Origin: Lepidodermella squamata
Lineage: Eukaryota; Animalia; Gastrotricha
DNA length: 64,000 nucleotides
Direction: 5' to 3'
Assembly (NCBI GenBank): GCA_047495785.1
Contig: JBLDXI010000089.1
Coordinates: forward strand, 62,001 to 126,000
The translations under genes were made by a program, and so were the position numbers. Positions within the stretch are counted from its first letter, which is position 1. Every line of letters begins with the position of its first letter. Of the stretch, positions 49,124 through 50,650 are shown one piece after another. The notes under the pieces were generated by a model. The model searched no databases, had not been told where the DNA came from, and saw nothing but the letters and a program-made list of their open reading frames with translations.

Positions 49124-50650
49124 GAGAAACGACTCAGGGAGGGAGAAGCGCAAACACAAACACAAGAGAGGCGCAAGGGACCCGCGGGCGAGTGCCGCAG
49201 GTGGCGAGAATAATAAAGACGCAACAGTAAATCGGCGGTCAGAAAACCGACAATAATTAGTTGCAACCTAGAGCCTAAATTGGGAAAAAACCAAACAATT
49301 GTTTTCTGAATCAAGAGTCGCCCAAAGGGCAGAACTCGGACAGGAACCGGAACGGGAACTGGAACTGGAACCGAGCAGCCGGAGAGGCAGAGCTCGGGGC
49401 TAGAAGAGCCACTAGACGAGAGAGGGAAAAATAAGCGGCAGGGCCGCGTTCTAACAGAATCTCCGAGGATACTAACCTCAGAATGACAAAAGCGACAAAA
49501 GCGCGTTCTAGCAGAATACTACGGAACAGAAATTGATACTAACCTCAGAAAAGGTAATATTCAATCGCAGATATTTACTATAAATTTGCAAAAATTTTGC
49601 CGGTATCCGCCGGTTTTGTTTTCAATTTTTCACTTTTTTGGCCCAAAATCGAGGAGTCCTAAGGCATAGGAACGCGGAAAAATTTCCTATGAGTCGATCG
49701 AGAAGCGCTGATCTTAAAACCGCGGCTGAATGATGAAGGATTCTGAATAATTCTACAGCCGGAAAATGTCAAATTTCATTGTTCGAAAAATTGACCTCGT
49801 TAAATTGTCTCGGTTGCGCAACAATGTAACATCTGGCACAATCGAAGTAAACAAATCCCATTGCGTAACACAGTAAGTTGATGGTAAACGAGTTCCGCTG
49901 TTCTCAGGTGCCATTTTTTGCGTACAATTCGGTTTTTCAAGCGGTTTTTTTTATAGGATAGCAAGGAATAAGCGGGATCGTGTTCGCCTCGTATTCATCG
50001 CCTCGTAATCATCGCCTTTTGTGTAATCGCCTCAAACTCTAACACAGGTACTCTTATGAGACGACAGCGCGTAATATTTATATAAAACGCTGCTGCAGGA
50101 AAAGCATATACAACTACTGCGGCGCAACTCAGCTCTACTATCGTAAGAGCTGAGGCCGTAAAAGTTGTGCGCTGTGTTATATACTACAGGGTTTGTCAGT
50201 TGTAGATAAGCGAATTTATTCCTTGTCAGCACTGCAAATGGCTGCGACTAGTTGGTTATCGTCCGCTCTTAACACAGCGGTCGTGGCACACTGAAACGCG
50301 CCAGTCAGGTGTATCTAGCATATACTGGTCGATGCGCTATGAAATCCTAATTATACGCACTAGTATAATTTCTCCCGGCCGCTGTCGAAGCGACTGGTTT
50401 TGTAGAGTTGCAATTTGCTGCCGGCTGTCTAAGCCGAAGGCCGCTGTAGAAGTGGCAATTCTTTTGGCTTCCTAAGCCACAGTATAACAAGGATGGATGG
50501 CAAATATATCGACCGGGAAGTGCGAAATGCAACAGACGGCAAAGTTATTGGTAAAAATATATACCTCTAACCTTGATGCTATGACGTAAAGCGCTAGTTG
50601 CTGTTTTTCTAAAAAACGGCGACAGGCGTCGTAAAGCAACTCGGATTGGT

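Follow-up and report, generated by a model that had tools for sequence, protein, structure and literature searches.

Why do mobile elements that sit at one point of a ribosomal DNA (rDNA) spacer open with a short motif that the uninterrupted spacer carries at the same distance from that point? This question is raised by a stretch of 64,000 nucleotides (nt) from the gastrotrich Lepidodermella squamata (contig JBLDXI010000089.1, positions 62,001 to 126,000, forward strand; assembly GCA_047495785.1), which is called the window throughout. A first, sequence-only reading had noticed the motif and its spacing and had proposed either that the elements insert at the start site of an antisense RNA polymerase II (Pol II) promoter and supply its downstream half, or that they restore an RNA polymerase I (Pol I) or spacer element of the host. 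We found that the four inserts of the window are long interspersed nuclear elements (LINEs) with an apurinic-type endonuclease (APE) and a reverse transcriptase (RT), or a non-autonomous partner of such LINEs, and that all of them lie at the splice donor, and in the orientation, of a spliced-leader (SL) RNA-type gene, here termed SL-b. The motif probably represents the best-preserved segment of a short, diverged SL-b copy at the 5' ends of these LINEs, with which the insertions come to stand behind the SL-b promoter again.

The insertion target is a spliced-leader RNA-type gene

According to Rfam models, the plus strand of the window contains six complete 18S-5.8S-28S units, and each spacer has a 5S gene on its minus strand. 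Comparison of all spacers with one empty spacer by blastn revealed four inserts at one spacer point, namely E1, E2, E3 and an insert cut by the window start (the edge insert), and left three spacers of ~2.15 kb as the empty class. The spacers belong to two alleles with ~4% divergence and an 18-nt indel between them. One allele hosts E1, E2 and E3 and is also present in an empty state (24445-26616), and the other allele hosts the edge insert. The insertion points of all four inserts fall inside a window of 12 base pairs (bp) at the SL-b donor, each of them on the minus strand (Table 1).

On this strand, the rDNA spacer carries two paralogous SL RNA-type genes, SL-a and SL-b, adjoining the 5S gene. 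They are defined by a 12-nt string from the 5' part of the gene at the insertion site, which has exactly two occurrences per unit. The exons of the two genes are similar (p = 0.0003), and a block similar to the promoter-like block ATACCGGCAAAATTTTT of SL-b is found upstream of SL-a (8168-8186) at equal distance, where the score alone gives p = 0.08 and both blocks are in register. In SL-b, the donor has the context GAG/GTTAGT (the slash marks the end of the exon) and is placed in a stem-loop by base-pairing of exon UUGAAUAUUAA with UUAGUAUCAA. The terminal hairpin of the gene is more stable than 198 of 200 shuffles (z = -2.3), and its C-GUAA-G cap is shared with the hairpins of both SL genes on L017, a metagenome contig from a related organism that is described below. 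The basal stems of these hairpins differ in sequence, and such covariation under a common cap is expected of a real structured RNA; the comparison was made on single-sequence folds, since MAFFT with RNAalifold misaligned the basal stems. A search for an Sm site gave only the U/C-rich tract UCUGUU ahead of the SL-b hairpin, which resembles AAUCUUGG and AAACUUGG in the same position on L017. Rfam, at gathering as well as permissive thresholds, reported no SL or small nuclear RNA (snRNA) family in the spacer, and scanning metagenomes with a 19-nt pattern of the SL-b exon returned chance hits in unrelated coding sequence only.

Expression of the two genes was judged from assembled contigs placed on the E1 unit, that is, from coverage and not from strand-specific start sites. 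The summed word depth amounts to ~105,000 in the 90-nt bin that contains the SL-a exon, compared to 2.6 and 11.5 in the adjacent bins. A template-switch oligonucleotide, which we take to be that of the SMART chemistry for complementary DNA (cDNA), directly precedes 33536 and 33532 in the contigs, and the SL-a contigs split into differing sequences at 33497 and 33494. Because of this depth peak, the oligonucleotide at the contig ends and the diverging downstream sequences, we regard SL-a as an abundant 5'-terminal leader. Its sequence differs from the spliced leaders of copepods and was not found in full-text literature searches; in Dimorphilus, trans-splicing is absent. For SL-b, the exon bin reaches a depth of 498 against ~35 in its neighbours (~14-fold), a difference that suggests expression of SL-b, although depth does not prove it.

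The SL-a leader contigs follow the genome for 4 and 7 nt beyond the predicted AAG/GT donor before they diverge, and both divergent parts open with T5. The sequences joined to SL-a may be paralogous SL RNA genes from elsewhere in the genome rather than trans-spliced messenger RNAs (mRNAs).

Element heads are diverged copies of the SL-b intron

Read on the minus strand, the host order is GAG/GTTAGTATC and, 34 nt onward, a block terminating in GCGC. All strings and coordinates of the sequence-only reading were present on recheck. In the empty site, GCGC stands at 8550 and GATACT at 8584 (offset 34), and the same offset is found in E2 (GCGC block at 49501, GATACT at 49535) and in E1 (34811 and 34845), followed by the edge insert with an offset of 33 (98 and 131). 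E3 shows an offset of 50 (62878 and 62928), equal to 34 + 16, where a 16-nt direct repeat at 62896-62922 adds one unit. What had been taken for insert 5' ends are genuine element 5' ends in minus-strand reading, since the long open reading frames (ORFs) of both E2 and E3 run along the minus strand.

The further claim that motif and spacing are conserved and the sequence block is not could be upheld for its first half: the motif is indeed the best-kept part, but the intervening 18-19 nt are still ~40-55% identical to the host. Over the 34 nt after GTTAGTATC on the minus strand, host identity amounts to 23/34 in E1 (binomial 3e-7) and 20/34 in E2 (binomial 4e-5), compared to only 15-18/34 in the best alternative register inside the elements. 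Local alignment against shuffles yielded p < 0.0005 for E1, p = 0.011 for the first head unit of E2 and p = 0.0085 for the edge insert, all in register, as well as p = 0.0015 for the second E2 unit, which is also in register and features a shorter spacing. Homology to the host stops at the same GCGC in every head, and no net length change has occurred in the heads despite ~40% substitution. The whole head block is, judging by these alignments, a diverged homologue of host sequence, of which the 15-nt motif is the best-kept part, with an identity of 76% in the motif versus 48% in the linker (Fisher p = 0.007, for boundaries that were set post hoc).

Within SL-b, the motif comprises a single-stranded, U-rich segment that precedes the terminal hairpin, together with the 5' arm of that hairpin. 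The heads end where the hairpin loop begins, so that loop and 3' arm are missing, and they keep primary sequence and distance, not RNA structure. A candidate role of the motif as an SL element common to SL-a was tried and rejected, as the introns of SL-a and SL-b are not significantly similar (p = 0.16) and only the comparison of E3 with SL-a was marginal (p = 0.03).

Substitutions cluster at the 5' junctions

Each filled unit was compared with the empty unit of its own spacer allele over 640-1000 nt upstream of the junction. For E1, E2 and the edge insert, the sole flank differences in this range are confined to the final 21 nt ahead of the junction (4-21 nt away), at positions -21, -20, -12 and -10 for E1, -19 and -18 for E2, and -12 and -4 for the edge insert; nothing else differs from the empty allele over 640 nt at E2 and over 1000 nt at the edge insert. 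The substituted stretch is the 3' part of exon and donor. This pattern suggests that the junction-proximal stretch was copied from element RNA and not inherited from the host, with a template that would have begun in the SL-b exon. At the other end of the elements, the 3' junctions place the first-strand nicks at exon positions -10 (E2) and -6 (E1) and at +2 (E3).

Several element families share the site

In both E2 and E3, ORF1 is gag-like and has CCHC knuckles, and ORF2 encodes an APE followed by an RT (Pfam Exo_endo_phos, Exo_endo_phos_2 and RVT_1). Their proteins are only 23-33% identical (33% in the RT), yet they occupy a common site. E1 shares its head architecture and ~110 nt of homologous 3' tail with E2 (p < 0.0005) and, having no ORF, is therefore regarded as a non-autonomous partner of the E2 family. 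No nucleotide similarity was found between E1 or E2 and the edge insert outside the head. For the ORFs of the window, exact look-ups came back empty, and a word-index search of proteins yielded no more than two hits, both distant.

Some further features of the elements were observed. In E2, a long pyrimidine tract ending in AG (49123-49160), ~10 nt before the ORF1 ATG, makes a good 3' splice site, which could act as acceptor for the SL-b donor in cis or for an SL in trans. Tandem repeats with a period of ~33 nt or multiples thereof at 48365-48582 of its ORF1 encode an Ala/Ser/Gly-rich stretch. ORF2 of E3 is split near 59589-59607, where the APE and RT parts overlap by 19 nt in different frames, either by a frameshift mutation or by programmed frameshifting. 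In the data of run X6, which seem to be DNA of a related strain, depth over the E1 body amounts to ~1-5% of that over the adjoining spacer, from which E1 would occupy a few percent of the rDNA units in that strain, and in run X1 its depth is zero. At 33978, one RNA contig fuses the SL-b remainder to the 3' end of another element ending in ...CCTAATAAACCAAAGTT, which indicates one more family at this site, with a presence in RNA.

Donor targeting in a related organism

Exhaustive searching of proteins with ORF2 of E2 as query led to L017, a metagenome contig of 10.9 kb. It contains a LINE, LINE-A, with an RT 63% identical to that of E3 and a homologous 3' tail, whose poly(A) abuts GGTATGTAG..., which represents donor plus intron of an SL-type gene. 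Next comes an SL-type gene that is intact, with an exon that has ATCTGCG.ATCGATT in common with SL-a. A second SL exon on the contig ends in GTGTAAG/GT, where another element, LINE-B, is fused straight to the exon and is followed by the same intron. LINE-B is ~30% identical to all other elements. As read from sequence, the targeting of an SL-gene donor beside an untouched paralog is conserved across organisms and across families that are ~30% identical.

On L017 and on a second contig, L018 (1-290, 4700-5170), related LINEs are arranged head to tail, and on L018 the same poly(A) tail twice precedes the 5' end of another LINE, with no recognisable target between them. On a third contig, L016, the surroundings of a related, poly(A)-tailed LINE are not of the SL type.

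A model for insertion behind the SL-b promoter and its alternatives

We propose a model in which a clade of APE-type LINEs would insert at the SL-b splice donor, always in the orientation of the gene. The element endonuclease would nick the plus strand within the 12-bp donor window and reverse transcription would start there, the template RNA being most likely a co-transcript from the SL-b promoter of the donor copy. This template would consist of SL-b exon and donor, followed by the family-specific head (~34-44 nt), i.e. a diverged SL-b intron through GCGC. The far cDNA end could subsequently anneal to the exon at the new target site, which would lead to a precise 5' junction and leave the copy again behind an SL-b promoter. 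For R2, co-transcription that strengthens target-specific integration and a 5' junction resolved by pairing have been proposed (cited in PMC4494074). The ancestral capture of the intron would be compatible with a long target duplication ending at GCGC, with 5' transduction or with template switching onto SL-b RNA, and the two-unit head of E2 shows intron capture to have occurred more than once in the E2 lineage. Between donor and ORF1, E3 has a 5' untranslated region of only ~73 nt and LINE-B a stretch of ~67 nt, leaving little space for a promoter of their own. The earlier idea of promoter replacement or hijack is thereby retained in altered form: the inserts lie behind a host promoter on the minus strand and bring their own downstream half, but the promoter would be that of an SL RNA gene.

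A number of observations weigh against this model. Taken alone, the motif match of E3 is not significant against shuffles (p = 0.64), and E3 is flanked by a plain 13-bp duplication with zero substitutions. LINE-B displays no intron-like head (p = 0.9); consequently, the motif is neither universal nor required for donor targeting. Each family is represented by one copy in the window, so that the flank substitutions could be repair errors and not part of an inherited head. The evidence for some selection on the motif is weak, given the small numbers and the post hoc boundaries. The heads lack the host hairpin and fold no better than shuffles (z at least 0). In addition, run X1 is labelled as RNA, and its RNA nature is only guessed.

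A functional role of the head would go beyond the proposed model. The U-rich tract and the 5' arm of the hairpin might constitute a working signal, carried by the LINE transcript or by its DNA, through which an snRNA-type Pol II promoter, factors of the Sm or SL ribonucleoprotein or the proteins of the elements treat the LINE RNA as SL-RNA-like. We assign a low probability to this reading. If true, diverged LINE families would be kept as fusions to the 5' half of an SL gene, and insertion would rebuild that half. An interpretation of the heads as structural mimics of the SL-b hairpin was rejected on the same folding scores.

The motif could alternatively serve as a landmark for element proteins at a fixed distance from the cut, in which case the head would recreate the target at the 5' junction and permit stacking or tandem arrays when free sites are scarce. 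E1, E2 and the edge insert all keep the motif sequence and a distance of 33-34 nt, with drift in the intervening bases, it is sequence and not RNA structure that the heads conserve, E2 carries two head units, and head-to-tail LINE arrays exist on L017 and L018, all in line with a landmark. However, LINE-A (E3-like) and LINE-B both target an SL-gene donor that is followed by an intron without the motif, the spacing is 50 in E3 and 19 in the second unit of E2, and no stacked pair is found within the window, which renders a landmark function unlikely.

Likewise, the head could be a neutral relic of a single ancient capture of target sequence, with motif and spacing preserved by descent and chance. 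Such an origin would agree with homology that ends at the same GCGC in all heads, with the common ancestry of the E1 and E2 heads, with the insignificant match of E3 and with the headless LINE-B. It would not readily account for a block that is in register with the present host in elements as dissimilar beyond the head as E1/E2 and the edge insert, for the different identity of motif and linker, or for the constant head length at the substitution level given above. A merely neutral head is hence regarded as distinctly unlikely.

A head that acts as an internal Pol II promoter, composed of an initiator (Inr) and a downstream promoter element (DPE) with a start at the first element base, would resemble Jockey, I, Doc or the trypanosomatid Pr77. 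LINEs with internal promoters and downstream elements are known, Pr77 being an example (PMC4748587), and a conserved block does stand ~26-34 nt downstream of a fixed junction. Of the seven copies, E1 alone matches the Inr consensus TCAKTY, a Drosophila consensus that may not be that of the host, and the DPE consensus RGWYV, expected at +28 to +33, is absent from +24 to +38 in all seven. Furthermore, the empty host site has the same block, where it lies inside an SL-type gene, LINE-B is without it, and the substitutions upstream of the proposed +1 suggest a template RNA that began further upstream. The insertion at an Inr-DPE start site put forward in the sequence-only reading is thus not borne out: the host unit is SL-b, and its start would be located ~42-46 nt upstream of the junction and not at the A after TAGTATC. 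Altogether, we judge an internal promoter to be very unlikely.

The position of the pre-ribosomal RNA (pre-rRNA) start bears on the remaining explanation. Pre-rRNA coverage begins ~600 bp to the right of the insertion site and ~500 nt ahead of 18S (Table 1), where the depth in run X1 climbs from ~35 to ~71,000 and above and a loose contig end is found at 35463. That the elements restore a host cis-element (of Pol I, the spacer or SL-b output) and that host selection keeps the motif, leaving the unit harmless or functional, is highly improbable, since the motif lies within the SL-b unit on the opposite strand from, and ~600 bp away from, the pre-rRNA start, heads without hairpin loop and 3' arm do not fold and are unlikely to rebuild a working SL RNA, and selection for host benefit acts weakly on a selfish element, even though the rebuilt unit retains exon, donor, spacing and U-rich tract and the general view of site-specific rDNA elements is that limiting harm lets them persist (PMC4640811).

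Relation to known site-specific retrotransposons

The closest parallels in terms of target are SLACS, CZAR and CRE1/2 of trypanosomatids and NeSL-1 of C. elegans, which share with the present elements an SL RNA gene as target, the orientation of the gene, the repetition of part of this gene on their 5' side and the dependence on a multicopy target. SLACS is transcribed from the SL promoter. In contrast to the present elements, this group belongs to early-branching clades, uses a restriction-like (PD-D/ExK) endonuclease and inserts inside the exon, whereas the elements described here have an APE-type endonuclease at the N-terminus of ORF2, sit at or around the splice donor and carry a head that copies the intron. 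To our knowledge, all retrotransposons described as specific for SL genes come from trypanosomatids or nematodes and use restriction-like endonucleases. A published overview of retrotransposon targets includes spliced leader exons (PMC4640811).

In architecture, the elements resemble R1/R2 of 28S and LINEs of the R1 and Tx1 clades such as Keno in U2 and Mutsu in 5S, with an ORF2 of APE and RT and a gag-like CCHC ORF1. As in LINEs of the R1/R2 type, one fixed site in a multicopy RNA gene is used by several families. For this type, target co-transcription and homology-assisted 5' joining have been proposed (PMC4640811; PMC4494074), and APE-type target-specific LINEs are known for rRNA, snRNA, 5S and repeats (PMC4640811). 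The differences lie in the target, an SL RNA gene in the rDNA spacer, and in the heritable intron-derived head, which is not described there.

A 5' head from a small nuclear RNA gene is also found in SINEU, other snRNA-headed retroposons and U6/L1 chimeras, to which snRNA-derived heads are added by template switching or 5' transduction (PMC4494074). The present heads differ from these in that they derive from the element's own target, are carried by autonomous LINEs and stand in register behind the promoter and exon of a real gene. With Jockey/I-type LINEs and Pr77 of L1Tc they have in common a conserved block ~30 nt past the first element base; however, the promoter consensus is not matched and the evidence favours a start further upstream, within the host gene. 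A literature search with incomplete coverage revealed no APE-type clade specific for an SL-gene donor and no heritable, in-register copy of the downstream half of a target.

The elements comprise an APE-type clade of at least three families, ~30% identical in protein, that targets the donor of an SL RNA paralog in two organisms. They provide a natural system for how LINEs that lack a promoter achieve transcription and precise 5' joining, for how one SL paralog serves as landing pad while the abundant paralog stays intact, and for whether an mRNA of 6 kb can borrow the signals of a small RNA.

Table 1. Features of the window discussed in the text, with positions counted from the first letter of the window.
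Feature	Position	Strand	Remarks
SL-b, uninterrupted copy	8531..8629	-	exon paralogy, donor stem-loop, hairpin
SL-b, parts	exon ~8629/8625-8593; donor GT 8592-8591; motif B 8564-8550	-	motif B is the 15-nt motif of the text; GUAA-capped hairpin ends at 8531
Putative promoter-like block ATACCGGCAAAATTTTT upstream of SL-b	8639..8655	-
SL-a exon and donor	8118..8159; identical at 33495-33536	-	RNA contig evidence at 33495-33536
E2, full-length LINE	43324..49534	-	ORF1 46832-49123 (CCHC), ORF2 43867-46839 (APE and RT)
E2, head unit 1	49501..49534	-	SL-b intron +10 to +43 in diverged, in-register form; motif B 49501-49515
E2, head unit 2	49444..49483	-	exon end and donor 16/16 identical, motif B; spacing 9 nt instead of 24
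SL-b exon and donor upstream of E2	49535..49576	-	substitutions at -19, -18
Displaced SL-b remainder downstream of E2	43252..43323	-	last 10 exon nt, donor, intron, motif B, hairpin
E1, non-autonomous, 0.87 kb, no ORF	33977..34844	-	head 34811-34844; exon copy 34845-34885 with 4 substitutions
E3, second autonomous family	57998..62927	-	A9 tail, 13-bp target duplication, motif-like block 62878-62892, repeat 62896-62922
Edge insert, 5' end of a further family, cut by window start	1..130	-	head 98-130; exon and donor copy 131-172 with 2 substitutions
Likely Pol I start region	35440..35463	+	onset of pre-rRNA coverage, run X1

A repeated box in the spacer

Every spacer additionally contains a 33-nt box in two copies of 91% identity (7922-7954 and 8448-8480), one of them ~50 nt downstream of the SL-b hairpin and the other ~25 nt upstream of the minus-strand 5S gene. 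This shared box could be a promoter or terminator element.
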